From the IMG/VR virus record IMGVR_UViG_3300032236_001613, positions 186,001 through 250,000 of that record: a stretch of 64,000 nt of DNA. The stretch is one strand, 5' to 3'. Numbering within the stretch: the stretch's first letter is position 1; every line of letters starts with the position of its first letter. The notes under the pieces are model-generated. The model had not been told where the DNA came from. It was given only the letters and a program-made list of their open reading frames with translations, and did no database searches. This document shows positions 462 through 15,286 of the stretch, one piece after another. A program made the position numbers and the translations under genes.

Positions 462-1180
462 ATTATAATATAATTCTTGTAATGATTTACTAATTCAATT
501 CTTGTTTTTAAATCAGTTGAAGGCCAATGTATTAACCAATCTCCAAATTGCCAATTTCCGTCAAATCCTAAGCGATCCCTTTGATCAGTATAATGATATA
601 ATTGATAATTAAATGAATTCATGTATCTTTGGGGAACTATTTTAACGATATTTTTATACTCCTCATTAATTTTAAGATCTGTATTTTTTTCAATAAATTG
701 CCATGCAGGATCCGTAGTTCCAGGAATTCCTAACATAGTAGCAATGCATTTTTGCTCTGTATCCCAAAATTTTAAAAAAGCTGGCTCTAGATGAATAATT
801 GTATCTAAAAAATTTAAACTTTCTGGGGAATTTTTAATTAATAAACTATCGGCGTTAACTCCATTAACATCGACTGCTATAATAAAATGGTGATCTTTTG
901 AAATTCTATCTTCAATTTTAATTGAAAAATTAGTGATCATCGAATCTGTCCCTGACCACCAAATCCACTCATACTCAGGATGTTCTCTCAAAATGTCTCT
1001 AGCAAAATGTATCTTTTCGAATCCGGTCATTAAAGAGCCGTTTCTAGATGTGGCAAAATTTGAATCTCTTGCATGTACTGCATATCCATGATATTTTGCA
1101 TACTCTACTTTATTCTGTTCCCACGTCAAATCAGCTAAAGGTTTATATCCAATATCGTGATGAGTAATTAATGCATACAT
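458..1180 (-). CDS. GT34 (GMA12/MNN10)-like glycosyltransferase
   Basis: NKVEYAKYHGY, EWIWWSGTDSMITN, DVNGVNADS, GDWLIHW; ATG at 1180 is a more likely start than 1213. Confidence 0.75.
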   Translation of the reverse strand: MYALITHHDIGYKPLADLTWEQNKVEYAKYHGYAVHARDSNFATSRNGSLMTGFEKIHFARDILREHPEYEWIWWSGTDSMITNFSIKIEDRISKDHHFIIAVDVNGVNADSLLIKNSPESLNFLDTIIHLEPAFLKFWDTEQKCIATMLGIPGTTDPAWQFIEKNTDLKINEEYKNIVKIVPQRYMNSFNYQLYHYTDQRDRLGFDGNWQFGDWLIHWPSTDLKTRIELVNHYKNYIII

Positions 1181-1995
1181 TAGAAATAAAACCCGTTTAT
1201 TCTTGGAAACCAAGTATCTCCGTATCCACCGTGTGGAGTTTTAGTTTGTTCGTAGTTTGAAATAATTTCACACCAATATGTTTTACCTAACCCTATAGCT
1301 ACGCTTAATGCAACACTTTGATTTCCGATAAATTGTTCGCATCCTTGTACATATCGAGCCATTTCTAATAAATCGTTAGTTTTCTGATATTGTATTTTAA
1401 TCTTAAAAAAATCTTCAAACTTAGAATGTTCTTCTTCCGTTCCTAAGAAAACTGCATAATCACCTAGCCCGTTATTAATCCATTCCTCCCATCCAGTTAC
1501 TTGTTGATCTCTTCCGTAAAGATATCTTTCCGTCCTGTTAACCACAATAGGCTTTCCAGATACACGTAATGGAGAAACTGGAGTCAACCAAGGTTCGTAT
1601 AACAATTTCCTTTTGATATCAATATTATGAATGTTTAATCCTTGTGTTAATGCGTAACATTCTGTCTGATTACCTTGCCAGCCTTTAATCAAATGGTATT
1701 TCCAATGGTCGCTAAAATCGTAATCAAACGTTTCACCGTTCCATACAGCGACTTTTTCTATATAATCTTGTGCTTCTAATAAAGGAGCTAATATATTATA
1801 ATCGTGTTGTGTTAATCTTCCAGATGCAGGACCGGCGTTTGGCCAACCTAACACGTTTTTTGCGTAATCGTCAAGAGCGTCAAGTTTCACATACATATTA
1901 CCGCCGCCTAACAGTTTTACTAAACATAAGCTGTAGATAGTATCACCAAAAGTGCCTAACGTATAAAAATTATTTACTTTCATTATTATTCCCAA
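1180..1995 (-). CDS. GT9/heptosyltransferase-like glycosyltransferase
   Basis: N-terminal GTFGDTIYSL and C-terminal LLEMARYVQGCEQFIGNQSVALSVAIGLGK. Confidence 0.6.
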   Translation of the reverse strand: MGIIMKVNNFYTLGTFGDTIYSLCLVKLLGGGNMYVKLDALDDYAKNVLGWPNAGPASGRLTQHDYNILAPLLEAQDYIEKVAVWNGETFDYDFSDHWKYHLIKGWQGNQTECYALTQGLNIHNIDIKRKLLYEPWLTPVSPLRVSGKPIVVNRTERYLYGRDQQVTGWEEWINNGLGDYAVFLGTEEEHSKFEDFFKIKIQYQKTNDLLEMARYVQGCEQFIGNQSVALSVAIGLGKTYWCEIISNYEQTKTPHGGYGDTWFPRINGFYF

Positions 1996-2903: not shown

Positions 2904-4031
2904 ATGTCTAATCACGGTCTAAAATATTTTACTCGAGAAAACTGTTTAATAAACAATAATGAAAAAATCGAAGATATATACTCATTTAAAAAGTTTCCAA
3001 TTTTTATAAATTGTACCAGTGATGAAGATAACTTAAACGATCAATTTTATGATATGAACTGGGGTATCTCTGAATCAGGACATTTACAATTGATAGACTT
3101 GTTAAACCCTACACTAATTTATTCTAACTATCACACTACCGGAGTAGTTGGTAAAATTTGGGATAATCACCATAAAAAAATATTCGATTTTATAAATCAA
3201 GATAATTTTAATAGTGTTTTAGAAATTGGCGGCGCTAGCGGTAAGCTGGTAAAACATTTTTGTAATCTTAATAGAGAATTTAATTGGTCAATTATTGAAC
3301 CTTCGATCAAATTGTCAACCATTGATCATCGAGTGACATGCATATCGGCATTTTTTGAAGATTATTCTTTTAATAAAAAGTTTGATACAATAGTGCATTC
3401 TCATTGCTTAGAACATGTATACAATCCTATTGTTTTTCTTAATAAAGTACACTCTTTACTTAACGACAATGGATACCAATATATTTCTATACCTAATATG
3501 AAATATGGATTAGAAAATAACTTTACTAATACTTTAAGTTTTGAGCATACTTTTTATATTGATGAATTTGTTTTAGAGTACTTACTAAATAAAACAGGGT
3601 TTATAGTTGTAGACAAAATAGTAGAAAACCATTCGATTTTTGTTAAAGCTAAAAAACAGAATAAATTGAATATATTACAAAAGGACTTTTTGTATATTAA
3701 AGAACTATTTTACAAATATATGTCTAATTTAAACAATGATGTTGTTACAATTAATTCAAAAATTAAGGATCAAAACTTTTATTTGTTCGGCGCACATATG
3801 TTTTCTTTATTATTATTAAATCTCGGATTGTACAACAAGAATATTGAATGTATTCTAGATAACGATACACAAAAGCAAAATAAAAGATTATATGGTACAC
3901 CGTATTTTGTAAAATCTATAGATTGTTTGAAAAATAAAGAATCACCTATTGTTGTTTTAAGAGCTGGAATTTATACTGATGAAATTAAAGAATCGATAGC
4001 AAAAGTCAATTCAACAACAATTTTTATATAA
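2904..4031 (+). CDS. Class I SAM-dependent (sugar C-methyltransferase-like) methyltransferase
   Basis: VLEIGGASG, FDTIVHSHCLEHV, FEH, C-terminal LFGA/ILDND domain. Confidence 0.8.
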   Translation: MSNHGLKYFTRENCLINNNEKIEDIYSFKKFPIFINCTSDEDNLNDQFYDMNWGISESGHLQLIDLLNPTLIYSNYHTTGVVGKIWDNHHKKIFDFINQDNFNSVLEIGGASGKLVKHFCNLNREFNWSIIEPSIKLSTIDHRVTCISAFFEDYSFNKKFDTIVHSHCLEHVYNPIVFLNKVHSLLNDNGYQYISIPNMKYGLENNFTNTLSFEHTFYIDEFVLEYLLNKTGFIVVDKIVENHSIFVKAKKQNKLNILQKDFLYIKELFYKYMSNLNNDVVTINSKIKDQNFYLFGAHMFSLLLLNLGLYNKNIECILDNDTQKQNKRLYGTPYFVKSIDCLKNKESPIVVLRAGIYTDEIKESIAKVNSTTIFI

Positions 4032-4040
4032 GGAAATACA

Positions 4041-5087
4041 ATGATTATTTGGGTAAATTGTAAAATAACAGACGTTCCATTAAATTCTTCCCCGTTGCGA
4101 TTTAATCTTAGAAAAGAAAGTAGATTTGATATAGCTCGGTATACTTTTGCTAGTTACGCAGCATTAGATTCATTAACAAGTAAAATCATTTTTAATTTAG
4201 AACTTGGAAACGAATTTTTAAATCGCAAAGAAGAAATGGAAAATTGGATAAAAAGTTTGTTTCCGCCGGAAAAATTGTCTATTTCGTGGTACAGATGCAA
4301 TAATCTAACACAATGGAAAGAAGTGCAAACAGTAATTAACAATATAAACGACGATCTTTTATATCTTGCAGGAAATGACGATCATGTTTTTTTTGATAAT
4401 AGTTTAGATTTATATAAAAAAGGATTAAACATATTAGATAACGATCCTGACGAAGATACCGCTCTAGTAAATTGTCATTATCCTGAAAGTTTAAGAGAAG
4501 CATTAAATCATCCTGAGCATCAGCTAACCGATTGTAAAAATTTTGTAAGTATAATACATCGACATTCGATTGGAATCGTTGTTATTAAAAAAGCACTATA
4601 TAATAGATTTTTATCTAAGGTAACAGACCCTGATAAAATAATGTTTCGTATGGATGATTGGCAAATAGACGGATACACAAAAATTTTTATCCCAACAAAA
4701 GAAATAAGCAAACACTTCGATGGGTACTCCCATGTAAATATCGATCCAAATGTTTGCCCTCCATTAGAAATCCCGCCTGGGTTTTTTGAAAAGAATGTAA
4801 CTATTAGATACGGGTTTGACGACTACGATCCGGAATGTGTAAATATTAATCCATTATCAACTAATTTACATGCTATCGATCCTAACGGAGCTGATTATAA
4901 ATTTTGTTTAAACGATATCCCTATTTTTTGGAGACCATTTATTAAACGTATAGTAATAGCTACTGAGTTAGATTCTCAAAAAATGTTCAAAGCTCGTAAT
5001 CAGCATTATATTGATTTAAGTTCGCCTGTGTTTTTTGGAAAAAAAATAGAGATTCCTCAGGTATGGATTGAAAATCATTTAGTGTAA
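4041..5087 (+). CDS. Hypothetical, possibly GT-A-like protein
   Basis: YLAGNDDHVF motif and glycan-cluster context. Confidence 0.4.
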   Translation: MIIWVNCKITDVPLNSSPLRFNLRKESRFDIARYTFASYAALDSLTSKIIFNLELGNEFLNRKEEMENWIKSLFPPEKLSISWYRCNNLTQWKEVQTVINNINDDLLYLAGNDDHVFFDNSLDLYKKGLNILDNDPDEDTALVNCHYPESLREALNHPEHQLTDCKNFVSIIHRHSIGIVVIKKALYNRFLSKVTDPDKIMFRMDDWQIDGYTKIFIPTKEISKHFDGYSHVNIDPNVCPPLEIPPGFFEKNVTIRYGFDDYDPECVNINPLSTNLHAIDPNGADYKFCLNDIPIFWRPFIKRIVIATELDSQKMFKARNQHYIDLSSPVFFGKKIEIPQVWIENHLV

Positions 5088-5133
5088 AATAAAAAAATCC
5101 AACAAATAAATAAAAGCCAAGAAGGTTTACACA

Positions 5134-6225
5134 ATGAATATAGTAATTCCTATGGTAGGTGCAGGGTCTCGATTTGCTAAAGAAGGTTTTCTCGAACCAA
5201 AACCTTTGATTGATGTCTTAGGTAAAACATTAATCGAGCATAGTATTGATAGCTTTAATGTTGCAGGTAAATTTATTTTTATTACTAGAGATTTTCATAA
5301 TCCCGAACATAATAAAAATTTATCTGAAATCTTAAAAAAGAAAAGACCTGAATCAAAAGAAATACGCTTAAAAAGATTAACAAGCGGAGCAGCCGAATCG
5401 GTATTAGCTGCAAAAGAATTGATTAATAACGATGAACCATTAATCATTTATAATTGCGATCAGCTTATTAATTGGAATCCAGAAGATTTTTTAAAGTTTA
5501 TCGTCAAGAAAAAACCCGATACGGCATTAGTTTTATATGACAGTACTGATCCAAAAAATAGTTTTGTCGAAATTATCCAAGGTAAAATTGTTAAATTTGT
5601 AGAAAAAGTGGTTATTTCAAATCATGCTTCTATAGGGTTTCATTATTGGGCACATGGTAGTGATTTTGTAAAAAGTGCAGAACAATTAATTGATAATTTT
5701 AGAGAAGAAGGCAAAAAAGAATGTTACATCAGCGGAACATTTGATTATTTAAAAGATAAAGTTATACTTCCTTATCATGTTCCGAATAGTGAATTCATTC
5801 CATTAGGAACTCCTGAGGATGTTGCAAAATATGTAGGTAAAGTTAAAGAGTTTACAAATGATAAACCTAAAAGCATCTTTATCGACATTGATGGTACAAT
5901 ATTAAAGCATATGCATACTATTTCTGACGTATATAAAGAAGAAGCTGTAGTATTGCCAGGAGTAATAGAAAAGTTAAATGAATGGGATAGTCAGGGATAT
6001 AAAATAATTCTCACAACTGCAAGAAAAGAGAGCACTAGAGAACACACTGAAGCACAACTTAGAAAATTCGGAATAGCATGGGATTATTTAATAATGGGCG
6101 TTGGAGGAAGAAGATATTTAATTAATGACAAATTGTCAGCAACTGATGCAGATCGTGCAGTTTCGATTAATGTTGTCACTAATGATGGGTTTAAAACTAC
6201 TAACTGGAAAAAACACGATCTATGA
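5134..6225 (+). CDS. Sugar nucleotidyltransferase fused to a C-terminal HAD phosphatase
   Basis: IVIPMVGAGSRF...PKPLI at the N-terminus; FIDIDGT, LTTAR, INDK at the C-terminus. Confidence 0.85.
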   Translation: MNIVIPMVGAGSRFAKEGFLEPKPLIDVLGKTLIEHSIDSFNVAGKFIFITRDFHNPEHNKNLSEILKKKRPESKEIRLKRLTSGAAESVLAAKELINNDEPLIIYNCDQLINWNPEDFLKFIVKKKPDTALVLYDSTDPKNSFVEIIQGKIVKFVEKVVISNHASIGFHYWAHGSDFVKSAEQLIDNFREEGKKECYISGTFDYLKDKVILPYHVPNSEFIPLGTPEDVAKYVGKVKEFTNDKPKSIFIDIDGTILKHMHTISDVYKEEAVVLPGVIEKLNEWDSQGYKIILTTARKESTREHTEAQLRKFGIAWDYLIMGVGGRRYLINDKLSATDADRAVSINVVTNDGFKTTNWKKHDL

Positions 6226-6545
6226 AAATAGTAAAATTAAAAGATATGAAAGACGGATGGTTTGTCGGCGGATTTCAACCTACAGCGTATTATACTAAGG
6301 ATGTCGAAGTAAATTATAGAATTCATCCTAAAGGGCAACTTTGGGATGTGCATTATCATAGCACTGTTACTGAAATTACTTTACTAATAAAAGGTAAAAT
6401 GATTATTCAAGGTAAAGAATTAACAGGCGGCGATATTTTTATTATCGAACCTTGGGAAATTACCGACCCAGTTTTTCTAGAAGACTGCGAAACTATTTGT
6501 GTTAAATTACCTAGTATAAATGATAAAAAAGTAGTTAAAAGTTAG
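6222..6545 (+). CDS. Cupin-domain protein
   Basis: GWFVGGF, HYH...E, GDIFIIEPWE; overlaps the upstream stop. Confidence 0.75.
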   Translation: MKIVKLKDMKDGWFVGGFQPTAYYTKDVEVNYRIHPKGQLWDVHYHSTVTEITLLIKGKMIIQGKELTGGDIFIIEPWEITDPVFLEDCETICVKLPSINDKKVVKS

Positions 6546-6550
6546 TAAAC

Positions 6551-7678
6551 ATGGATACCGTACAGAGAAACAATGATATTGTTTATAATAATAATGATTT
6601 AGAGCTCTTATATACATTTAAAAAATTCCCGGTATTTATGGGATGTACAGAACAAGAAATTAAAGACGATGTTTACTATGATTTAAATTTTTTTATCAGC
6701 CGTAAAAGCGGAATGATACAAATAAATCCAGTTGCACCGTTAGAACTAGTGTATCAGACAGAGCATCAATCCGGAGCAGTCGGAGCTGGTTGGTTTAAAC
6801 ATCATAACACATTTGCTAAATTTATAAAAGATTATAATCCTTGCAATGTATTTGAAATTGGCGGCGGACATGGATATTTAAGTAATGAATACTATACGTT
6901 AGATAGCAAAATAAATTGGACTATGATAGAACCTAATCCTTCTATTGTTGAATCTAATGCTACTGTTATTAAAGGATTTTTTAAAACTGTAGATCAGATA
7001 CCCAATCCAGTTGATGCAGTAGTTCATAGTCATTTCTTCGAGCATTTACATTATCCTGCTCAATTTGTTCAAATCTTGTCTTGTTTAAAGAACGGTATAA
7101 AAGTATTTTTTAGTATTCCTGATCTTAAAAAACAACTGGAACAAAAATATACTAATGTATTAAACTTCGAACATACATTTTATTGTACCGACGACTACGT
7201 CGAATGGATTTGGAATCACTATGGATTTAAACTATTAAAAAAGATTTATTTTGAAAACGGACATAGCATTTTTTATGCATTTGAAAAACAAGATACTACA
7301 AACACAGCCGAATATATTAATTCATATGAAACAAATAAAACTATATACTTAAACTATATTGATTATTACAAGAATTTGGTTAAAGATTTAAACAAGAGAA
7401 TTGAAGAAGAAACTAGCCCTGTTTTTATTTTCGGAGCCCATGCATCAACACAGTATCTACTTGCTTATGGCCTAAATGCTGATAAAATTAATGGAATTAT
7501 TGATAATAGTTCTCTTAAAGAAGGTAAACGTTTGTACGGAACTAAGTTTATAAGTCAAAAAACAAGTATATTAAAGGAAATTGAAAACCCTGTAGTAATA
7601 GTACGTGTAGGTATACAAAACGACGAAATTAAAAAAGATATATTAAAAAATATTAATTCAAATGTTACTTTTATTTAA
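6551..7678 (+). CDS. Class I SAM-dependent methyltransferase, paralog of 2904..4031
   Basis: VFEIGGGHG, VVHSHFFEH, FEH, IFGA, IIDNS, KRLYGT. Confidence 0.8.
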   Translation: MDTVQRNNDIVYNNNDLELLYTFKKFPVFMGCTEQEIKDDVYYDLNFFISRKSGMIQINPVAPLELVYQTEHQSGAVGAGWFKHHNTFAKFIKDYNPCNVFEIGGGHGYLSNEYYTLDSKINWTMIEPNPSIVESNATVIKGFFKTVDQIPNPVDAVVHSHFFEHLHYPAQFVQILSCLKNGIKVFFSIPDLKKQLEQKYTNVLNFEHTFYCTDDYVEWIWNHYGFKLLKKIYFENGHSIFYAFEKQDTTNTAEYINSYETNKTIYLNYIDYYKNLVKDLNKRIEEETSPVFIFGAHASTQYLLAYGLNADKINGIIDNSSLKEGKRLYGTKFISQKTSILKEIENPVVIVRVGIQNDEIKKDILKNINSNVTFI

Positions 7679-7681
7679 AGG

Positions 7682-7710
7682 TTGACAGCAGAGATAAATA
7701 AACGTATATT
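7682..7710 (+). promoter_or_regulatory. Sigma70-type promoter heading the tRNA array
   Basis: TTGACA-N17-TATATT. Confidence 0.8.
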
Positions 7711-7757
7711 AAATGACTACGATGCAATGCGTAGACGTTAATAAACAAGGAATAAAG

Positions 7758-7898
7758 ATGATTGCAACGACATTTACTACTCATAATAGTAAGACCTTTA
7801 AAGCAGGTTCTATACCCGCTTGGTCGTCAATTATGAATTATTCATATGATCGCGGTCAAGAAGGGAGTCCAAGGTCCGGAAGTGAGATGTTAGAGTAA
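7758..7898 (+). CDS. Putative attenuator leader peptide (46 aa; an in-frame ATG at 7722 is also possible)
   Basis: AAGGA SD before ATG 7758; stop codon lies in the antiterminator loop; 33 distinct codons in 46. Confidence 0.6.
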   Translation: MIATTFTTHNSKTFKAGSIPAWSSIMNYSYDRGQEGSPRSGSEMLE

Positions 7899-7935
7899 CA
7901 ACAAAACATCTAAAAACACTTAAAGGACCCTAGGA
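7868..7935 (+). promoter_or_regulatory. Antiterminator hairpin overlapping the terminator 5' arm
   Basis: GGTCC 7873-77/GGACC 7925-29, AAGTG 7880-84/CACTT 7917-21, AGATGTT 7885-91/AACATCT 7905-11. Confidence 0.65.
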
Positions 7936-7962
7936 TTAAGAACCCTGGGGTTTTTTGTTTTT
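7926..7962 (+). terminator. Intrinsic terminator (attenuator)
   Basis: GACCCTAGG/CCTGGGGTT stem followed by TTTTGTTTTT. Confidence 0.8.
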
Positions 7963-7963
7963 A

Positions 7964-8072
7964 GCAGTGTGAAAATAAGGTAACGAGGACCTTGCAGCGC
8001 ACTATAAACATGCTGTAAACGGGCGGAACCGGGGATCAAACCTGTGGCGAAAACGCAGGGAGTAAAATCCGG
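7964..8072 (+). ncRNA. Unidentified structured RNA
   Basis: Stems AAGGT/ACCTT, GCAGCG/TGCTGT, CCTGTG/CGCAGG, CCGG/CCGG; possible AGTGT/GCACT pseudoknot. Confidence 0.5.
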
Positions 8073-8122
8073 AATTTATATACTAAAGCATACCCAGTGC
8101 AGTGTTCTTTAGTATATAAATT
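8073..8122 (+). promoter_or_regulatory. Long hairpin, candidate RNase III processing site before the first tRNA
   Basis: Perfect 16-bp inverted repeat AATTTATATACTAAAG/CTTTAGTATATAAATT. Confidence 0.5.
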
Positions 8123-8126
8123 AATT

Positions 8127-8211
8127 GGGTAAGCGCCGGAGTGAGAGAGCCGGATTTGACTGTAAATCAAACGTCCCGACTGAGTAGGTGCGAATCCTAC
8201 CTTACCCACCA
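8127..8211 (+). tRNA. tRNA-Tyr(GTA)
   Basis: TTTGA-CTGTAAA-TCAAA, long variable arm, T-loop TGCGAAT, CCA. Confidence 0.9.
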
Positions 8212-8217
8212 AATAAT

Positions 8218-8321
8218 GCGGCAGTAAGTGCGTAATGGGCTAATGGTGGCCAATCCTGTCTACATGGATCAAATGTAACGGTTGCACCTTGATGTAGGTT
8301 CGAATCCTATCTGCTGCACCA
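8218..8321 (+). ncRNA. Atypical 104-nt tRNA-like gene, possible CTA anticodon
   Basis: Acceptor GCGGCAG/CTGCTGC-A-CCA and canonical T arm; irregular D and anticodon region. Confidence 0.6.
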
Positions 8322-8407
8322 CATTGCAACGGTTCTACCATCGTTAATCGGTAGCGCATACTTGGATGCGAGAAAAGACCTTTTACGTCGACCAAGACTA
8401 ATTTTAT

Positions 8408-8485
8408 GCTCCCATAGTTTAGAAGGGCCCAGAACATCCGATTCTCAGTCGGAAAACGCAGGTTCGAATCCTGCCGGGAGCGCCA
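8408..8485 (+). tRNA. tRNA-Glu(CTC)
   Basis: TCCGA-TTCTCAG-TCGGA, CCA. Confidence 0.9.
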
Positions 8486-8529
8486 TTTTACTTAATAAAT
8501 ATTACAAATTTTAAAATAAAGGGTTACTA

Positions 8530-9135
8530 ATGAATATCTCAGATTACAAACAATTTATAAAAGATACAGGCACTTTAATACAAATTGGTGCTTTTGATGG
8601 TGTTGCTTGCGAAGACTCAGGGTTTAGAGAATTAGTACTTTATAAAAATTATAATGCTCATTTGGTTGAACCAGTTATAGATTTTTTTCAGGCGTTACAA
8701 AAAAACTATAGTAATGCTACGAGTAATGTTCGATTTTATAATCAAGCAATTTATACAGAAAATGGAGAATTACCTTTTTTTAAAAATTACACTGACCCAT
8801 TACAATGTACTTTTATAAGAGAAAATGTAGCTGAATATCATGGGCAAACAATACTAGTACAGTCACGAACTTTTGATACTTTTTTACAAGAAAATAACAT
8901 TAATGAAATCGAAGGATTATTTATTGATGCAGAAGGTGCCGAAGATACTATACTCCAACAGCTTTTTGAAAAAACGAATATCAGACCTAATATAATTCGT
9001 TATGAATGGCCACATTTGCCTGACCCTGTAAACACAATCAGATACATTATGTCTTATGGCTATACTGTTTCTCCCTGCATCTATTCAGGCGGTCGTGTTG
9101 ATAACATTTGTATTAAAAACGACCTTTTAGTTTAA
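8530..9135 (+). CDS. FkbM-family methyltransferase
   Basis: IQIGAFDG, LVEP, LFIDAEGAE, IRYE. Confidence 0.8.
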   Translation: MNISDYKQFIKDTGTLIQIGAFDGVACEDSGFRELVLYKNYNAHLVEPVIDFFQALQKNYSNATSNVRFYNQAIYTENGELPFFKNYTDPLQCTFIRENVAEYHGQTILVQSRTFDTFLQENNINEIEGLFIDAEGAEDTILQQLFEKTNIRPNIIRYEWPHLPDPVNTIRYIMSYGYTVSPCIYSGGRVDNICIKNDLLV

Positions 9136-9139
9136 TCTC

Positions 9140-9214
9140 GGTTCCATAGTATATCGGTTAATACATCGGCTTGTCACGTCGAAGTGAGGGGTTCGATTCC
9201 CCTTGGAACCGCCA
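9140..9214 (+). tRNA. tRNA-Asp(GTC)
   Basis: TCGGC-TTGTCAC-GTCGA, G73, CCA. Confidence 0.92.
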
Positions 9215-9219
9215 AATAT

Positions 9220-9295
9220 GCCATCTTAGCTCAGTTGGTAGAGCAGCAGACTGAAAATCTGCGTGTCCCCGGTTCAATTCCGGGAGATGGTACCA
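9220..9295 (+). tRNA. tRNA-Phe(GAA)
   Basis: GCAGA-CTGAAAA-TCTGC, CCA. Confidence 0.95.
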
Positions 9296-9299
9296 GTTA

Positions 9300-10020
9300 T
9301 TATGCCCATCTCCCGTGATCAAAGCTATTGTCAGGGTTTTTAAATTTTCTTAAAGATGATTCTATTCCGGTTACCGGCCACGATATGTGATTTTTATATA
9401 AATGATATATCAACATGTTTTGTGGAGTAAAACACACTCCTTCGGTTGTATATTGATCAATATAATTAAAAACAGACGAATATATGGACATGACATCGCT
9501 ATTGCCTATAGCAAACTGATCGTTTATCCCTGCTCCTTGTCTTTCGGTATCTGGTGTTATTATCATTGGTGTGTTTATACGGTCAAGGTATTCTTTAACT
9601 TTATTTAAAAATATGTAATTATTTAAGCATAAATCTGGCCTTGCTCTAATCACTAAATCATATTTGCCAAACATAGCTTCGTATTTTTGTCTAATATGAC
9701 CAACACGTTGTACGCCATTAAACATATACCAAGCATGAGAGGCCCATGTATGAGTACTATGAGGTCCGCCTAAAATATATGGTTTAGTTTCATCAAATAT
9801 AGGTTCGGGTACAATATCAAAATGAACTACATAATTATTTTTTGGTAAATTATTAACCAATTTAACATAAAACTCATGTTTGTTATTATTCCAACTAGGA
9901 GGAACCCCTTTATCAATGGAATTGTTAGAATTCCAAACATGTATAAACCAATCTAATTGATCATAGATCAAAATCCTTAGTAAACCTCGGTCGACCTGAT
10001 AATTCAATTGCTACTTTCAT
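9300..10020 (-). pseudogene. Frameshifted putative glycosyltransferase-like gene
   Basis: ATG 10020 gives MKVAIELSGRPRFTKDFDL*; the body (YDLVIRARPDL, INDQFAIG) is in another frame. Confidence 0.6.
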
Positions 10021-10045
10021 GCGACTATTTATTGTTAGAGTTTAT

Positions 10046-10122
10046 GGGGCCATAACTCAATAGGCTAGAGTAACTGGCTTTTAACCAGTAAGTTGTGAGT
10101 TCGAGCCTCACTGGCCCTACCA
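10046..10122 (+). tRNA. tRNA-Lys(TTT)
   Basis: ACTGG-CTTTTAA-CCAGT, CCA. Confidence 0.93.
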
Positions 10123-10129
10123 TTTCAAT

Positions 10130-10206
10130 GCCTCCGTAACTCAATGGATCAGAGTGCTTGGCTTCGAACCAAGAAGTTGGGAGTTCGAATCTCTCCGGGG
10201 GCGCCA
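10130..10206 (+). tRNA. tRNA-Arg(TCG)
   Basis: CTTGG-CTTCGAA-CCAAG, CCA. Confidence 0.93.
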
Positions 10207-10261
10207 TATTACGTGATAAGTAAACAGCAGACAGTTTACAGAAACACAAAGGAGATTTTTA

Positions 10262-10843
10262 ATGAATAAGTTTATTGTTTCGATTATTGCCGGACTTGCT
10301 TTTGCGAATCTTGCAGTAGCCGCGGATTATGCTGGTGTTGATTATCAAGATAAGCAGAAGGTCGACGTTGCTGAACAACACGATGTATTTGGTGCTTATA
10401 TTGGACATAAGTTTTCTGACACAGGATTCTCTGTTGAAGGACGCTTAGAAAATGAAATTGTGCATGATCCTAGTAAGCATGAAGGGCTCGTTCAGGTAAA
10501 AGGAACTTATAATGTACCTGCAGCAATTCTAGAAGTTTATCCTTATGTCAGCGCCACAGTTGGCTATAAGAGCGAAGCAACTAGTAATTTTGATTTTTAT
10601 GTTTTAGAAACGGGATTAAAGTATACCCAACTACCTAACGTAGAACTACGTTATGGACTACGTCTACGTACTCCGTTTAACGAAAGTTCGGTAGGCGAAG
10701 GCAACCATTACCGTACAGTAGAAAATAGCATCAACGCCGTTTATAAACTAGACAGTCATAATGGCGTTACTTTAAAATATGCACGTGAGCATGGTGATAG
10801 CAATTATCACACTTACGGTGTTGGTCTAGTACACTCCTTCTAA
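10262..10843 (+). CDS. Outer-membrane beta-barrel (porin-like) protein
   Basis: Signal peptide ending AVA, alternating beta-strand pattern, C-terminal YGVGLVHSF. Confidence 0.7.
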   Translation: MNKFIVSIIAGLAFANLAVAADYAGVDYQDKQKVDVAEQHDVFGAYIGHKFSDTGFSVEGRLENEIVHDPSKHEGLVQVKGTYNVPAAILEVYPYVSATVGYKSEATSNFDFYVLETGLKYTQLPNVELRYGLRLRTPFNESSVGEGNHYRTVENSINAVYKLDSHNGVTLKYAREHGDSNYHTYGVGLVHSF

Positions 10844-10847
10844 TCAT

Positions 10848-11297
10848 ATGGCAATAATTGCAGCCTTATTATGTCTGCTAGGCTGGTTTTTGCCATTAAC
10901 AGATTATCTAACTCCTAAATCAGGAGTAGGTTATTGGATGGGTATAGTAGGAGCGTCCATGATGCTCCTACTTTTAACTTATAGTCTGCGAAAACGTTAT
11001 AAATTCTTAGATTGGTCACCCCCACTTAGTAAGTGGTTTAATGCACACATATTTTTAGGTCTATATGGGCCTTTATTAATCTTATATCATTGCGGCTATC
11101 ATTTAGGTGCTTTTAATAGTAATATGGCTTTATGGTCGATGATTATAGTTGCTATTAGCGGAGTTATAGGTAGATTTTTATATAATCGTCCTCAATTTAA
11201 AAAAGCATTCGCTATTTGGCATGTGGCACATTTGCCTTTTGTTTTTATGTTAGCTGCAGCAGCAGTTATACATATACTTGCAGTAAACATATATTAA
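10848..11297 (+). CDS. His-containing multi-pass membrane protein (possible heme b ligands)
   Basis: Hydrophobic helices with WFNAHIFLG, LYH, WHVAHLP, IH. Confidence 0.55.
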   Translation: MAIIAALLCLLGWFLPLTDYLTPKSGVGYWMGIVGASMMLLLLTYSLRKRYKFLDWSPPLSKWFNAHIFLGLYGPLLILYHCGYHLGAFNSNMALWSMIIVAISGVIGRFLYNRPQFKKAFAIWHVAHLPFVFMLAAAAVIHILAVNIY

Positions 11298-11305
11298 AAA
11301 CGTAT

Positions 11306-11381
11306 GGTGGCTATAGTGTAGAGGTTCGCACACTAGGTTGTGGCCCTGGTAGTAAGGGTTCAATTCCCTTTAGTCACCCCA
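11306..11381 (+). tRNA. tRNA-His(GTG)
   Basis: G-1:C73, CTAGG-TTGTGGC-CCTGG, CCA. Confidence 0.92.
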
Positions 11382-11447
11382 AATTATTTTTATAATTAGT
11401 CTAGGAATATAGATAATTTTCTCTTATAATTATCTATATAATTTTTC

Positions 11448-11537
11448 GGAAGTGTGGCAGAGTCCGGTTTATTGCAACAGTCTTGAAAACTGTCGAGTTT
11501 AATCGCTCCGTAGGTTCGAATCCTACTACTTCCGCCA
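11448..11537 (+). tRNA. tRNA-Ser(TGA)
   Basis: ACAGT-CTTGAAA-ACTGT, long variable arm, G73, CCA. Confidence 0.95.
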
Positions 11538-11541
11538 AATT

Positions 11542-11599
11542 TAGGATGCTTCCAGCAAATAAAAAACTTTTCTTGAAAAAAAGCCAAAACAGCATCCTG
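11542..11599 (+). ncRNA. Anticodon-display RNA copy 1 (TGA stem-loop)
   Basis: AGGATGCT/AGCATCCT closing stem, CAGCAA, internal CTTTT-CTTGAAA-AAAAG. Confidence 0.7.
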
Positions 11600-11609
11600 T
11601 TTAATTTTA

Positions 11610-11704
11610 CCTCGATAGCACAGGTGTGCGGCTAGGTCTTATAAACCTGGGAGAGTTGCCAGATTAGCGACAACGGGAAGGATCGTTACCTTCATCGAGG
11701 ACCA
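11610..11704 (+). tRNA. Non-canonical tRNA with TAT anticodon and long variable arm
   Basis: CCTCGAT/ATCGAGG-A-CCA; 6-bp stem CTAGGT-CTTATAA-ACCTGG; T-loop ATCGTTA. Confidence 0.75.
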
Positions 11705-11712
11705 AATTTTAG

Positions 11713-11741
11713 TTGACTAATTGGTAAATGCGTGTTAAAGT
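11713..11741 (+). promoter_or_regulatory. Sigma70-type promoter with extended -10
   Basis: TTGACT-N17-(TGt)TAAAGT. Confidence 0.6.
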
Positions 11742-11751
11742 ATACGCATAC

Positions 11752-11780
11752 GCTAAGAAATTAGCAACGCTCTTTAATAA
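11752..11780 (+). promoter_or_regulatory. rrn-type boxB/boxA antitermination site
   Basis: GCTAA-GAAA-TTAGC hairpin followed by CGCTCTTTAATAA. Confidence 0.7.
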
Positions 11781-11795
11781 ATGAAAATAGTTTAT

Positions 11796-11871
11796 GGTCC
11801 CATCATCTAGAGGCCTAGGATATTGCCCTTTCACGGCAAGTACACGGGTTCAAATCCCGTTGGGACTACCA
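11796..11871 (+). tRNA. tRNA-Glu(TTC)
   Basis: TTGCC-CTTTCAC-GGCAA, CCA. Confidence 0.93.
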
Positions 11872-11908
11872 TACTTTTTAACTAAATATCTAGCTACGGA
11901 GAAATACT

Positions 11909-12364
11909 ATGAGCTTTCTAGACGTTTTCAAGAAAGAAAAAGACAAGCTAGTTGAAGAAGTTACTAAAGTCGAATCTACTGTTGTCGAAGAAGTAAAGAA
12001 AGTAGAAGCAGTGGCTGAACGAGCTGTTGCTGCTACCGAAGCAGTAGTTAAAGAAGTTGTAGTAGATTTTGAAAAGATTTTAACAGAAGCCGAGCAGGCA
12101 GCAGAAAGAACTCTACGCGATGTAGAGTTAGCTCGCCAGTTATACGAAAAAGCACTGGCTAGAGCAAATCTAGCAGCTAATAGAGCTAGAGAAGCTGCTG
12201 AACAAGCAGCAGCAAAAGCCCAAGAAGAAGCTGAAAGAGCCTTGTTGAGAGCTGAACGTGCTGCTAAGTTAGTGATTGGTATTTCAGGATCGGCGCCAGC
12301 TCCGGTTATTGCGCCTCCACCAATCGCTCCTGCTCCACCCCCTACAAGTAATACTACTCAATAA
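11909..12364 (+). CDS. Ala/Glu-rich coiled-coil protein with Pro-rich tail
   Basis: Composition; GGAG SD. Confidence 0.6.
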   Translation: MSFLDVFKKEKDKLVEEVTKVESTVVEEVKKVEAVAERAVAATEAVVKEVVVDFEKILTEAEQAAERTLRDVELARQLYEKALARANLAANRAREAAEQAAAKAQEEAERALLRAERAAKLVIGISGSAPAPVIAPPPIAPAPPPTSNTTQ

Positions 12365-12366
12365 TT

Positions 12367-12442
12367 AGTAGTGTAGCATAGTGGCTAATGCAGCACCTTC
12401 ATACGGTGTTTACCATCGGTTCGAGTCCGATCACTACTACCA
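12367..12442 (+). tRNA. tRNA-CAT (elongator Met or Ile2)
   Basis: GCACC-TTCATAC-GGTGT, paired 1:72, CCA. Confidence 0.88.
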
Positions 12443-12446
12443 GTTT

Positions 12447-12561
12447 TAGGATACCTACAGCAACATAAATTACTCATGCTAAGAGAGAGGTCGTTGGTTC
12501 AAGTCCAACCTAGTCTTAGGACTAGTAGCTCAGTTGGTAGAGCACTAAAATGTGTATCCTG
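12447..12561 (+). ncRNA. Anticodon-display RNA copy 2 containing a circularly permuted tRNA (GCT loop)
   Basis: AGGATAC/GTATCCT closing stem; order is anticodon loop, variable loop, T arm, loop-closed acceptor stem, D arm. Confidence 0.8.
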
Positions 12562-12570
12562 TTTTATTCG

Positions 12571-12648
12571 GCACCGGTGGCAGAGTGGCCCAATGCAAGA
12601 GTCTGCAAAACTCTAAAGTCGTCAGTTCGAATCTGACCCGGTGCTCCA
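12571..12648 (+). tRNA. tRNA-Cys(GCA)
   Basis: AGAGT-CTGCAAA-ACTCT, U73, CCA. Confidence 0.93.
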
Positions 12649-12697
12649 ATATACTTGTATAATAGATAACAAACATATATAATATATGAAATTATAC

Positions 12698-12773
12698 GGC
12701 CTCGTAGCCTAGTGGATCAGGCAACAGCCTTCTAAGCTGTCTTACACAGGTTCGAATCCTGTCGAGGTCGCCA
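12698..12773 (+). tRNA. tRNA-Arg(TCT)
   Basis: ACAGC-CTTCTAA-GCTGT, CCA. Confidence 0.93.
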
Positions 12774-12824
12774 AATTAATTAGTTTGACATCTTAATAAA
12801 GATAAGTAATAATATATCAACAAC

Positions 12825-12898
12825 GCGGAATTGGCATATGGGTTGTGCTCCAGCCTTCCAAGCTGGCTAAACGAGTTCGAGTCTCGTATTCCGCTCCA
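12825..12898 (+). tRNA. tRNA-Gly(TCC)
   Basis: CCAGC-CTTCCAA-GCTGG, U73, CCA; TTGACA at 12785 upstream. Confidence 0.93.
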
Positions 12899-12915
12899 AC
12901 TTTTAAGAGGCTCTA

Positions 12916-13134
12916 ATGAATAATCTCGGTGAATTAAGAGATTACGCTGTTGCTCGAGGATATAAAATCAAAGAGTTTAACGGATATGCACTACATATTG
13001 GGCGTGATACTTATACTATGTTAGCTGGAGAAATTTATCTCAATAAGATTAAAACTCCTACTAAAGAAGTTTTAAAGAAATTTACAGAAAAGTCTGCTGC
13101 AAAAAAAACTGCAGCAACAGCAAAGAAAAAATAG
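12916..13134 (+). CDS. Hypothetical basic protein
   Basis: ORF with GAGG SD. Confidence 0.55.
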   Translation: MNNLGELRDYAVARGYKIKEFNGYALHIGRDTYTMLAGEIYLNKIKTPTKEVLKKFTEKSAAKKTAATAKKK

Positions 13135-13140
13135 TTTTGT

Positions 13141-13221
13141 GCCCTAATGGTGAAATTGGTAGACACGCAAGATTTAGGTTCTTGTCTTCGGGTGGGGGTT
13201 CGAGTCCCTCTTAGGGCACCA
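13141..13221 (+). tRNA. tRNA-Leu(TAG)
   Basis: CAAGA-TTTAGGT-TCTTG, short variable arm, A73, CCA. Confidence 0.92.
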
Positions 13222-13228
13222 ATAGTTT

Positions 13229-13289
13229 TAGGATGCCTACAGCAAATTTAAAAATCAAAATGTCAATTTGAAAACAAATGCGCATCCTG
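13229..13289 (+). ncRNA. Anticodon-display RNA copy 3 (GTC stem-loop)
   Basis: AGGATGC/GCATCCT closing stem, CTACAGCAA, internal TCAAA-ATGTCAA-TTTGA. Confidence 0.7.
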
Positions 13290-13298
13290 TTTAAATAT

Positions 13299-13372
13299 GC
13301 CGGTGTAGTATAATGATAGTGCGACGGTCTCCAAAACCGTTAGTGGGAGTTTGATTCTCTCCACCGGTGCCA
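13299..13372 (+). tRNA. tRNA-Trp(CCA)
   Basis: ACGGT-CTCCAAA-ACCGT, CCA. Confidence 0.92.
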
Positions 13373-13384
13373 AATCGAGGACTT

Positions 13385-13699
13385 ATGACAAAAAAATTTA
13401 CATTTAATGATTTACAACCTAGAGTTGAAATGCTAATCGATGCTCTAGAAAATCGTGGCGCTTGTGCTAGCGGCTTACCATATGCTCCGGGCGTTAAAGC
13501 AGTTGCTGAAAACTATAAGTCAATGTTAGATTTTATAAGAAATAAAACAATTAACAAAGACGATCTCATCAACAGTTTATCAACAGCTAAAGCACTTGTA
13601 TTAGAACGAGCAGGTGGTAATCAAATTGATAGAATACGTAAAATTCTAGATGCTCTTGACTCCTATATGATGAGAGAGTATAATAAACAGAACAGTTGA
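13385..13699 (+). CDS. Hypothetical protein
   Basis: GAGG SD before ATG 13385. Confidence 0.55.
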   Translation: MTKKFTFNDLQPRVEMLIDALENRGACASGLPYAPGVKAVAENYKSMLDFIRNKTINKDDLINSLSTAKALVLERAGGNQIDRIRKILDALDSYMMREYNKQNS

Positions 13700-13721
13700 C
13701 CCTTCGTCTAGCGGTAGGACA
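13697..13721 (+). pseudogene. 5' remnant of a tRNA-Gln-like gene
   Basis: TGACCCT-TC-GTCT-AGCGGT-AGGAC-A: acceptor 5' strand plus Gln-type D arm, no 3' half. Confidence 0.65.
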
Positions 13722-13735
13722 AATATAAATACTAT

Positions 13736-14278
13736 ATGCTTAGTAAAAATATTAGTTCAGAGACAATCGAAAAATTAATTGATTCAGGTTTAAAAACCTC
13801 AGAAATTGCATCTAAGCTCGGTATCTCTACTGCAACAGTTTCTTATTGGAAAAAGAAACTCGGAAAAGAACTTAGTAATATCAAACATGATTGGAAAAAA
13901 ATTCAAGAAGCCCACAACAATGGGTCTACTTATTCTCAATTATACAAAGAGTTTGGTGTTACTAAAAGATCATTACAGAAAGCTAGAGATCGAGGAGATT
14001 TCAAGGTTAGACAGCGTAAAAAATTGTCAAAAGATGACGCTAAAATTAGAAAAAGAATTATATGCAGAGAAGCGTGGATGCGGTATTATAGTAGAAAAAA
14101 ATATCAAACTCCGGCTGATGAAGATATTAAAAAATTACAAGAATTTTATGCTAATTGCCCGGTTGGTTATGAAGTAGATCACATCATACCTATAAGTAAA
14201 GGCGGATTACATACATTGTCGAATCTTCAATACTTAACTATTAAAGAGAATAGACAAAAAGGTAATAAGATATTATAA
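13736..14278 (+). CDS. HTH-HNH homing endonuclease
   Basis: N-terminal SEIASKLGISTATVSYW; YEVDHIIPISKGGLHTLSNLQYLTIKENRQK. Confidence 0.88.
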   Translation: MLSKNISSETIEKLIDSGLKTSEIASKLGISTATVSYWKKKLGKELSNIKHDWKKIQEAHNNGSTYSQLYKEFGVTKRSLQKARDRGDFKVRQRKKLSKDDAKIRKRIICREAWMRYYSRKKYQTPADEDIKKLQEFYANCPVGYEVDHIIPISKGGLHTLSNLQYLTIKENRQKGNKIL

Positions 14279-14289
14279 TTTAACACTAT

Positions 14290-14363
14290 TGGGGAATCTT
14301 CTAACGGCAGGAAGGCGGACTTTGACTCCGCTAATCTAGGTTCGAATCCTAGTTCCCCAGCCA
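14290..14363 (+). tRNA. tRNA-Gln(TTG)
   Basis: GCGGA-CTTTGAC-TCCGC, U1:A72, CCA. Confidence 0.93.
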
Positions 14364-14369
14364 ATTTTT

Positions 14370-14443
14370 GCCCGATTAGCTCAAAAGTAGAGCGCACGAC
14401 TGATAATCGTAAGACAAAGGAGCGTTACCTTTATTGGGCACCA
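14370..14443 (+). tRNA. tRNA-Ile(GAT) with atypical D and T loops
   Basis: CACGA-CTGATAA-TCGTA; T-loop AGCGTTA; CCA. Confidence 0.85.
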
Positions 14444-14459
14444 TATAAATAAAGACAAT

Positions 14460-14535
14460 TGGAGTGTAGCTCAGCGGCAGTAGCGTTCGCCTGTTAAGCG
14501 AATGGTCGTAGGTTCGATCCCTACCACTCCAGCCA
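14460..14535 (+). tRNA. tRNA-Asn(GTT)
   Basis: TTCGC-CTGTTAA-GCGAA, CCA. Confidence 0.92.
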
Positions 14536-14543
14536 AATTTTAG

Positions 14544-14572
14544 TTGACCATTTTCGAAATGTTCAATATAAT
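14544..14572 (+). promoter_or_regulatory. Sigma70-type promoter
   Basis: TTGACC-N17-TATAAT. Confidence 0.7.
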
Positions 14573-14601
14573 ATATTCAAGTTAGTAAATAGTTTCGCGT
14601 T

Positions 14602-14675
14602 GGGGGATTGATGTAGTGATAGCCTGGGACCCTTGCACGGTCTTCGCGAGAGTTTGATTCTCTCATCCTCCACCA
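14602..14675 (+). tRNA. tRNA-Ala(TGC)
   Basis: G3:U70, GGACC-CTTGCAC-GGTCT, CCA. Confidence 0.9.
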
Positions 14676-14683
14676 AAGTTTGA

Positions 14684-14757
14684 TGCAGGGTAGTAGAACG
14701 GAACTACGCTAGGCTCATAACCTAGAGAACTTGGTTCGACTCCAAGCTCTGCTTCCA
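14684..14757 (+). tRNA. tRNA-Met(CAT), initiator-like
   Basis: 1:72 mismatch, CTAGG-CTCATAA-CCTAG, CCA. Confidence 0.85.
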
Positions 14758-14766
14758 GTTTGAAAC

Positions 14767-14854
14767 GGATGGTTGCCTGAGCGGTTAAAGGAGCGGGTTG
14801 CTAACCCGTCGCGGTGAAAACTGCGCATAGGTTCGAATCCTATACCATCCGCCA
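14767..14854 (+). tRNA. tRNA-Ser(GCT)
   Basis: GCGGG-TTGCTAA-CCCGT, long variable arm, CCA. Confidence 0.94.
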
Positions 14855-14876
14855 ATTTGTTATATAGAGGAATAAA

Positions 14877-15092
14877 ATGCAAGAGTATAAGCCGACCGGT
14901 AGTTATCGTATGTCACGTCAAGCCAAGCAGATGTTATCTAGGATCCAGGATCCTATTGAGAGAACTGAAGCAAAACGTTTAATTATTCAAAGTGAGTTGC
15001 ATCTTCAGTTGACTCCTAAGCGTAATCCGCTTGATAAGGATCGCACAACTAAAAATAGTCGCAATAATAAAGACGACTCGTTAGAAGAGTAA
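14877..15092 (+). CDS. Hypothetical protein
   Basis: GAGGA SD. Confidence 0.55.
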   Translation: MQEYKPTGSYRMSRQAKQMLSRIQDPIERTEAKRLIIQSELHLQLTPKRNPLDKDRTTKNSRNNKDDSLEE

Positions 15093-15102
15093 ATAAAGTT
15101 AG

Positions 15103-15178
15103 GCCTTCTAAGCATTGCTGGCGATGCACCGGATTTGTAACCCGGGGATAGTCTGTTCGATTCAGACAGAAGGCACCA
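15103..15178 (+). tRNA. tRNA-Thr(TGT)
   Basis: GCCTTCT/AGAAGGC acceptor, loop TTTGTAA, CCA. Confidence 0.85.
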
Positions 15179-15182
15179 GTTT

Positions 15183-15286
15183 AGACGGACCTGTAACCAT
15201 ATTCCGTCTCCGCCGGAGCGAAAACAGGATGGGCTGCTGCCGCGGGGTTTGACTGTTTCCTGACACACAAATAACAGTCATGTGTT
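15183..15286 (+). ncRNA. Pseudoknotted structured RNA between tRNAs
   Basis: AGACGGA/TCCGTCT with CCTGT/ACAGG; GACTGTT/AACAGTC with ACACA/TGTGT. Confidence 0.6.

Follow-up and report, generated by a model that had tools for sequence, protein, structure and literature searches.

A conserved pseudoknotted RNA upstream of the tRNA gene array in a clade of uncultured freshwater jumbo phages

Phage RNAs described beside tRNA genes and the locus analyzed

Several structured RNAs have been described in or beside the tRNA gene clusters of phages. GOLLD and ROOL are orphan, highly structured and pseudoknotted noncoding RNAs of 500-800 nt from phages and prophages that lie near tRNA islands. GOLLD was first seen in lake metagenomes and can hold tRNAs in a variable region (PMC12286853). 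In phage T4 two small stable RNAs of unknown function, rnaC and rnaD (species 1 and 2), are annotated in the tRNA cluster and are made from the same precursor as the tRNAs. Theta ribozymes, i.e., minimal HDV-like ribozymes of gut phages, are associated with phage tRNA arrays, their cleavage site lies within 5 nt of a tRNA, and they adopt the HDV fold (PMC10879173), a nested double pseudoknot (P1, P1.1, P2, P3, P4) with a catalytic C in J4/2. Cis-acting processive antitermination RNAs, such as the put RNAs of HK022, the EAR element and the nut-like sites of rrn leaders, are transcribed early in an operon, close behind a promoter and ahead of long or untranslated RNA genes. The put RNA consists of two adjacent plain stem-loops of about 70 nt without a pseudoknot, located between an early promoter and the terminators they override, EAR is a pseudoknotted element of about 120 nt, and rrn leaders are followed by long RNase III stems. 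Near-perfect RNA helices between two functional RNAs of one precursor, such as the T7 early sites and the 16S/23S stems, are the classical form of RNase III substrates.

The locus analyzed here lies in a window of 64,000 nt, bases 186001-250000 of the 328-kb IMG/VR virus record IMGVR_UViG_3300032236_001613, which is estimated to be 92% complete (positions below are those of the window). The window encodes a T4-type family B DNA polymerase and tail-fibre proteins. The nearest cultured relatives by polymerase are Sinorhizobium phage Phosso, Agrobacterium phage Atu_ph07 and the Rak2/GAP32-like jumbo phages, at only 44-50% amino-acid identity. About 27 tRNA genes, all on the + strand, follow the element. 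The DNA occurs in freshwater and lake DNA metagenomes, with no RNA run among the sequencing runs, so that transcription, RNA ends and abundance are inferred from sequence alone. The G+C content rises from about 27% in the flanking genes to 39-47% over 7800-8490.

The preliminary description of positions 7964-8122 had reported four stems, a possible AGTGT/GCACT pseudoknot and a 16-bp perfect hairpin in a GC-richer non-coding stretch between an attenuator and the first tRNA. This observation is confirmed, as all stems, the pseudoknot and the hairpin are present where they had been placed (Table 1), with the one qualification that the fifth pseudoknot pair, U7970·G7999, competes with the closing pair of P3. 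The element called an attenuator is the ordinary conserved terminator of a small conserved protein gene.

Compared with these systems, the RNA of the window shares with GOLLD and ROOL the context of a phage RNA next to a tRNA island, and in some relatives the tip of the long hairpin P6 holds tRNA-like arms. However, the Rfam models for both do not match, the core has about 110 nt (160-300 nt with the hairpins P6 and P7), it lies strictly at the 5' head of the array on the tRNA strand, and nothing suggests multimeric cages. In T4, rnaC and rnaD lie at the 3' end of the cluster, after tRNA-Arg, while the RNA described here is always at the 5' end. The covariance model R1 (see below), run without filters on T4 66000-76000, gave no hit on rnaC or rnaD (best 7 bits, elsewhere in the locus). 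In contrast to theta ribozymes, its 5' end abuts a terminator or promoter, the core ends 55 nt before tRNA-Tyr, the strand order PK5'-P2-P3(5')-PK3'-P3(3')-J-P4/P5 cannot be mapped onto the HDV order, and no HDV-type model matches. No sequence or fold similarity to put, EAR or the rrn leader sites was found, where the comparison with put rests on its fold, and the Rfam models searched do not match. The fold supported by covariation is an H-type pseudoknot with the further helices P2, P3 and P4/P5, not two plain stem-loops as in put. A boxA-like word in the 3' arm of the P6 hairpin of the window (UGUUCUUUA) is not conserved in the family, where the arm reads UGCUUUA, and it is buried in a helix. 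P6 has the length and near-perfect pairing, roughly two turns, of an RNase III processing stem, but the sequence of its base is conserved across the family, which RNase III alone does not require, and its tip tolerates large insertions.

A search of window positions 7650-8520 against all 4,227 models of Rfam 15, including riboswitches, ribozymes, tmRNA, RNase P, 6S, GOLLD, ROOL and leaders, at E <= 10 with permissive filters, returned nothing in 7964-8072. Only a 15.7-bit chance miRNA match was found on the minus strand of the hairpin. At gathering score, Rfam likewise gave nothing on the element, and twelve homologous loci gave only tRNAs and one group I intron elsewhere. Neither ARAGORN nor the Rfam tRNA and tmRNA models detected a cloverleaf or tRNA-like domain in 7964-8122. 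A blastn search of 50,697 cultured phage records with the window region and with a main-type homologue gave no real match. Model R1 run on Sinorhizobium phage Phosso, Agrobacterium phage Atu_ph07, Escherichia phage A4, Xanthomonas phage XbC2 and Cronobacter phage GAP32 gave only hits of E 0.03-0.18, which lie away from tRNAs, the GAP32 hit being in what reads as coding DNA. A pattern scan of 185,579 prokaryote genomes gave at least 120 hits, and as none of 120 has the P2 stem plus the pseudoknot, they are regarded as chance matches and give no clue to the host. Literature searches by topic and by sequence words found no description of the RNA, although prior detection without a name in a catalogue of 8,495 IMG/VR structured-RNA candidates (PMC10690425) cannot be excluded.

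Structure and conservation of the RNA

Table 1. Features at and around the element in the 64,000-nt window (on the + strand from the promoter at 7682-7710 to the tRNA array).
Feature	Position	Description	Supporting observations
Promoter	7682-7710	Near-consensus sigma-70 promoter, TTGACA-17-TATATT; likely start of the transcript carrying the small ORF, the RNA and the first tRNAs	11 of 12 matches
Small protein gene	7758-7898	46 aa from the ATG at 7758, frame open from 7713; motif ..W.xI..(Y/N/S)DR(G/T)(Q/P)(E)..	Peptide conserved in relatives with synonymous changes; no Pfam or PHROG family
Intrinsic terminator of the small gene	7921-7962	GC stem ACCCUAGG/CCUGGGGU, 9-nt loop and U-run, flanked by an A-tract	-17.7 kcal/mol, z -3.2; conserved and covarying in relatives
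Element under study	7964-8122	Pseudoknotted core and long hairpin	Whole stretch folds with z = -4.4
Covariance model R1 match	7961-8075	Core	74.3 bits, E 2.7e-18
Pseudoknot	7966-7969 with 8000-8003	AGUG pairs with CACU in the P3 loop	Alignment pair 6-53 is AU 62, UA 13, CG 2, GU 4
P2	7977-7993	AAGGU 7977-7981 with ACCUU 7989-7993, 5 bp; almost invariant 7-nt loop AACGAGG	94% paired, 4 of 5 pairs show double changes; A-U changed to G-C in a close relative
P3	7994-8016	GCAGCG 7994-7999 with UGCUGU 8011-8016, 6 bp with two G·U pairs at the ends; 11-nt loop CACUAUAAACA (8000-8010), whose first four bases form the pseudoknot	Alignment helices 42-48 with 78-88 are 87-97% paired; closing G·U pair in 71 of 96 sequences
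J3/4	8017-8026	AAACGGGCGG, most conserved single-stranded segment of the family	AACGGGCGG at least 90% conserved
P4/P5 arm	8027-8072	P4 CCGG(G) 8029-8033 with (U)CCGG 8068-8072; internal loop GAUCAAA / GAGUAAAA; P5 CCUGUG 8041-8046 with CGCAGG 8054-8059, loop GCGAAAA; 'AGUA' subtype	All six P4 pairs covary
P6	8073-8122	Perfect 16-bp hairpin, 8073-8088 with 8107-8122, extending to 20 bp with one C·U mismatch and an 8-nt loop	z = -6.83, 0 of 200 shuffles fold as well
tRNA-Tyr(GUA)	8127-8208	First tRNA of the array, long variable arm; 5' end 4 nt after P6	Rfam tRNA, 42.1 bits; missed by ARAGORN
tRNA array	8127-17999	About 27 tRNA genes	
Promoters within the array	12785, 13656, 14251, 14544	Further strong promoters	

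Searches through the flanking methyltransferase genes did not lead to relatives, whereas the DNA polymerase led to about 600 related viral contigs. In a DNA search of five large relatives the only nucleotide-level similarity to the closest of them, at 85%, covers exactly the terminator plus the RNA core. Four homologues read by eye already showed compensatory changes. A degenerate pattern drawn from the invariant words hit at least 120 viral contigs, many of them 190-380 kb long. A covariance model (R1) was then built from 21 main-type sequences and it found 97 matches in 96 loci of related IMG/VR jumbo-phage contigs. The absence of conservation and covariation in related phages, which had been named beforehand as the finding that would speak against the reading as a structured RNA, was thus clearly not what was observed.

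In the model alignment 90.6% of cells are base-paired, compared to 54% in shuffles and at most 41% with slid partners, and the covariation score is 0.70 compared to 0.17 in shuffles and at most 0.09 with slid partners. The model alignment leans toward the given structure, although both controls are far below the observed values. Of 23 nested pairs, 21 change on both sides. The pseudoknot pairs xGUG upstream of P2 with CACx at the start of the P3 loop and its fourth pair covaries, with AGUG/CACU in 77 of 79, UGUG/CACA in 15 of 15 and CGUG/CACG in 2 of 2 sequences. The consensus order is the 5' strand of the pseudoknot, P2 (5 bp), P3 (6 bp), J3/4 with the consensus RAACGGGCGG, P4 (6 bp), an internal loop starting with GGAUG, and P5, which occurs in two architectures within the family. 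Frequent G·U pairs, such as the closing pair of P3, place the fold on the + strand RNA only. About 30 unpaired bases are at least 90% conserved and lie in AACGAGG, UAAA, AACGGGCGG and GAU. Mutual-information analysis recovered the helices and the pseudoknot but found no tertiary pair beyond these, because the candidate positions are invariant. A small ORF within the RNA (AUG in GGAUGG) is not conserved between subtypes.

P6 is the only perfect inverted repeat of 16 bp or more with a loop of 40 or less in the whole 328-kb genome, and ten shuffled genomes have none. It is the local form of a family-wide stem with the base UAUUAAAGCA/UGCUUUAAUA and a variable tip of 3 to more than 100 nt. P6 starts within a few bases of P4 in most loci, is conserved as a 15-25 bp stem, and has at least 12 bp in 87 of 97 loci, with a median of 17 bp and 13% G·U pairs, so it is an RNA helix. 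It is not a terminator, as no U-run follows it. In the window the stem is AU-rich and is followed by AAUUGGG, which is the start of the tRNA, and a terminator scan reported none there. Many relatives add a second conserved and covarying hairpin, P7 (ACACAUUC-loop-GAGUGUGU), before the first tRNA, which the window lacks. A T4 late-promoter-like word (TATAAATT, 8114-8121) and a MotA-box-like word (TGCTTTA in P6 of relatives) were seen by eye, but they are not positioned consistently and lie inside the helix, and these readings were therefore dropped.

Genomic context

tRNAs lie downstream on the same strand in 86 of 97 loci, the other loci being too short to tell, and almost never upstream. The first tRNA is most often tRNA-Tyr(GUA). 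In some relatives, ORFs of up to about 1.2 kb separate the RNA from the first tRNA. One copy per genome was found in five of five large records. Most copies lie behind a near-consensus sigma-70 promoter or directly after a terminator. A promoter of this quality lies within 400 nt upstream on the same strand in 57 of 92 loci, compared to a background of 0.44 per kb, and in 17 of them it is placed so that transcription would start 5-40 nt before the pseudoknot. An intrinsic terminator lies within 200 nt upstream in 31 of 62 loci. The 4 kb downstream are nearly free of intrinsic terminators, with 8 in 213 kb compared to 11 on the opposite strand.

Three upstream arrangements occur, namely terminator then RNA, as in the window, where no promoter lies between the two, terminator, promoter and then RNA, found in several lineages, and a 51-aa basic ORF (ORF-B) ending just before the RNA. 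ORF-B is encoded directly upstream of the RNA in about 37 relatives but is absent from the genome of the window, so it is not an obligatory partner.

Possible roles of the RNA

The analysis establishes the structure, conservation, strand, position, copy number and promoter association of the RNA, while co-transcription with the tRNAs and cleavage by RNase P and RNase III are inferred, and an action on the polymerase remains speculative. The interpretation given in the preliminary description, a cis-acting processivity or antitermination RNA (put-like) or a ribozyme followed by an RNase III-type processing stem, is partly supported. Structured RNA and the pseudoknot are supported by covariation and a cis-acting role fits the position, whereas put-like is only an analogy, ribozyme has no support, and the RNase III-type stem is plausible from its length and conservation only.

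The reading that is tentatively preferred is that the RNA forms the leader of the tRNA-array transcription unit in a clade of 0.3-0.4 Mb freshwater jumbo phages. In this view it would be transcribed by the host sigma-70 RNA polymerase, in the window by read-through from the upstream promoter past the terminator of the small gene. It would be separated from the first tRNA by RNase P at 8126/8127, and probably by RNase III within P6, with P6 acting as a processing or stabilizing stem. The roughly 30 invariant unpaired bases would form a binding surface through which the leader acts in cis, so that the long untranslated array is fully transcribed and correctly matured. The most likely form of such an action is a processive, anti-Rho type modification of the transcription complex, although this specific mechanism is by itself regarded as unlikely, and stabilization or insulation of the precursor is an alternative. 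The strict head-of-array, same-strand and single-copy position, despite free rearrangement of both neighbors, favors a cis-acting leader, and co-transcription is inferred from the standard promoters, the absence of a terminator after the RNA, and the tRNA 4 nt downstream. However, the scarcity of downstream intrinsic terminators removes the most obvious need for antitermination. Together with the further promoters within the array of the window, it weakens the put analogy and leaves only Rho-dependent termination as a target. The strong terminator directly upstream in the window, the ORFs that separate the RNA from the first tRNA in some relatives, and the lack of similarity found to known antiterminator RNAs also speak against this reading.

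Jumbo phages carry near-complete tRNA sets and how these arrays are expressed and controlled is essentially unknown. A single-copy RNA with a covarying pseudoknot, fixed at the head of the array in at least 97 related phage contigs, gives a concrete and testable handle on this question, and it adds a third, much smaller member to the puzzling group of phage RNAs that accompany tRNA islands (GOLLD, ROOL). RNAs with this conservation pattern have repeatedly turned out to be riboswitches, ribozymes or polymerase- or protein-binding elements. The family is large and diverse enough for experimental study, also in E. coli, because its promoters and terminator are of the standard bacterial type. One possibility, which is doubtful but not excluded, is that the core is a new class of functional RNA dedicated to phage tRNA operons. 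It could be the first riboswitch or the first protein-independent processive antiterminator known to govern tRNA gene expression, or a new ribozyme or protein-binding RNA used by jumbo phages to manage their private tRNA supply.

A less likely but serious rival is a trans-acting, stable small RNA, in which the pseudoknotted core would be the functional molecule that binds a protein or another RNA. It would only be produced together with the tRNAs and be released by RNase P or RNase III, with the 5' pseudoknot protecting one end and P6 the other. The RNA is an autonomous module, as it is kept in one relative in which the hairpin is missing and an ORF follows, and where it lies 0.6-1.3 kb from the first tRNA. 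The invariant unpaired bases suggest a specific partner, a structured 5' end plus a long 3' hairpin is the usual build of a stable sRNA, and T4 rnaC/rnaD and GOLLD/ROOL are precedents (PMC12286853). However, a trans-acting RNA could sit anywhere in or beside the array, no homology to T4 rnaC/rnaD or GOLLD/ROOL was found, no partner has been identified, and the two small neighboring genes are not always present.

A riboswitch is unlikely but also remains a serious rival. The core of pseudoknot, P2, P3 and J3/4 would be an aptamer for a small molecule, perhaps one that reports translational or nucleotide status, and ligand binding would set how much transcription or processing proceeds into the array. 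The size, the H-type pseudoknot, the covarying stems and the invariant junction and loop bases match the conservation pattern of aptamers, the RNA lies in a 5' leader, directly behind a promoter in 17 loci, and the two interchangeable P4/P5 architectures look like a peripheral arm around a fixed core. However, no expression platform is visible, as P6 is not followed by a U-run, the P7 tail is only weakly U-rich, and no ribosome-binding site is sequestered because the downstream genes are tRNAs. Furthermore, no plausible stable alternative pairing to the 16-20 bp P6 stem was found, no Rfam riboswitch model matches even at E <= 10, and no riboswitch is known to control tRNA genes.

A self-cleaving ribozyme of a new class, which would cut the primary transcript, for instance to free the array RNA from the upstream mRNA, is very unlikely. 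The compact pseudoknotted fold with many invariant unpaired bases and the presence of small theta/HDV-like ribozymes next to phage tRNAs (PMC10879173) would fit. However, no known ribozyme model matches even at E <= 10, the strand order does not fit the HDV double pseudoknot, the element is not within 5 nt of a tRNA end, RNase P already defines the 5' end of the first tRNA, and in 17 loci the RNA starts the predicted transcript, so nothing upstream needs removing.

A DNA-level element, such as a protein operator, recombination site or origin palindrome, or a chance GC-rich spacer is least likely, since, although P6 is a perfect DNA palindrome with conserved arm sequences next to a tRNA gene, the spacing of its arms varies while the pairing is kept, its G·U pairs would be mismatches in DNA and on the opposite strand, the core stems covary with strand-specific G·U pairs, and chance is excluded by the 97 homologues and by the shuffles.

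tRNA and tRNA-like genes next to the leader

The tRNA-Tyr(GUA) that starts 4 nt after the long hairpin of the leader has a long variable arm and an unusual T-loop (UGCGAAU), and it is found by the Rfam tRNA model with 42.1 bits but missed by ARAGORN. It is followed by a 105-nt tRNA-like gene, which possesses an 8-bp acceptor stem, a normal T-arm and an encoded CCA but an oversized middle part. The Rfam tRNA model gives it a score of only 15.9 bits, and ARAGORN finds nothing. Upon inspection by eye, one possible anticodon loop of this gene would read CUA (amber suppressor), although the arm is imperfect and this putative assignment rests on visual inspection alone. Between the tRNA-like gene and tRNA-Glu(CUC) lies an 87-nt non-coding spacer that is richer in G+C, for which no Rfam match and no significant fold (z -0.3) was found and which shares a 15-nt direct repeat with the preceding tRNA-like gene.

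In the relatives, a conserved non-canonical tRNA-Tyr(GUA)-like gene (GGAG...CCGGCUGUAACCCGG...GGUUCGAUUCC...CUCCACCA) directly follows the leader at L085, one of the homologous loci (L numbers) that carry the leader, and also at L162, L160, L104, L174, L189, L140, and L134. As this gene is missed by ARAGORN, tRNA-Tyr as first tRNA is more common than the ARAGORN count of 27 suggests. Furthermore, in L085, L165, L161, L189, and L181 the tip of P6, the long hairpin of the leader, carries a tRNA-like insert with a T-arm (GGGGUUCGAAUCCCC) and an anticodon-like loop CUGUAAA or CUGCAAA, which recalls the tRNAs embedded in GOLLD. The only duplication of the leader seen is in L158, in which a second, degenerate copy (32 bits, with the GCAC word lost) lies upstream of a tRNA-Tyr in the same contig as a full copy.

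Positions of features in the window and in homologous loci of relatives
Sequence	Position	Strand	Feature
Window	2904-7678 and 8530-9135		Cluster of methyltransferase and further genes
Window	7758-7898 (frame open from 7713)		Small protein gene, 46-61 aa
Window	8127-8208		tRNA-Tyr(GUA)
Window	8216-8320		tRNA-like gene
Window	8274-8288 and 8325-8339		15-nt direct repeat
Window	8321-8407		Non-coding spacer
Window	11610-11704		tRNA-Ile(UAU), 95 nt, called by ARAGORN and not listed by Rfam
Window	14370-14440		tRNA found by Rfam and lacking in ARAGORN
Window	12785-12813, 13656-13684, 14251-14279, 14544-14572, 18615-18643	+	sigma-70-like promoters (11 of 12)
L085	about 985-1070	-	Non-canonical tRNA-Tyr(GUA)-like gene
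L085	about 1130-1210	-	tRNA-like insert in the tip of P6
L085	1333-1488	-	51-aa ORF
L158	653-766		Full copy of the leader
L158	1388-1486		Degenerate second copy of the leader
L205	6214-6405	-	Group I intron

Small protein genes upstream of the leader

The small protein gene of the window has its own consensus promoter and a conserved terminator, and its peptide motif ..W.xI..DR(T/G)(P/Q)E.. is kept in relatives with synonymous changes, while no match to a Pfam or PHROG family was found. It probably encodes a highly expressed early protein. In L085 and about 37 other loci, a basic, helical ORF of 51 aa (..EQLxKLxxxKxERAxxY..) ends 10-25 nt before the pseudoknot. This ORF is absent from the window's genome, and it could be an RNA-binding or regulatory partner in those lineages that encode it.

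Organization of the tRNA array and its neighbors

Further promoters resembling the sigma-70 consensus in 11 of 12 positions lie inside and after the tRNA array of the window. The array is probably composed of several transcription units, of which only the first has this leader. For two positions of the window the tRNA callers Rfam and ARAGORN disagree, each reporting one tRNA that the other does not. In one relative, L205, a group I intron was identified inside the tRNA array (Rfam 57.3 bits). Just upstream of the array and between its first tRNAs, the window encodes a cluster of methyltransferase genes, two of these with a C-methyltransferase C-terminal domain, together with a nucleotidyl-transferase/HAD phosphatase fusion and an FkbM-type methyltransferase, which suggests a sugar- or nucleotide-modification pathway.
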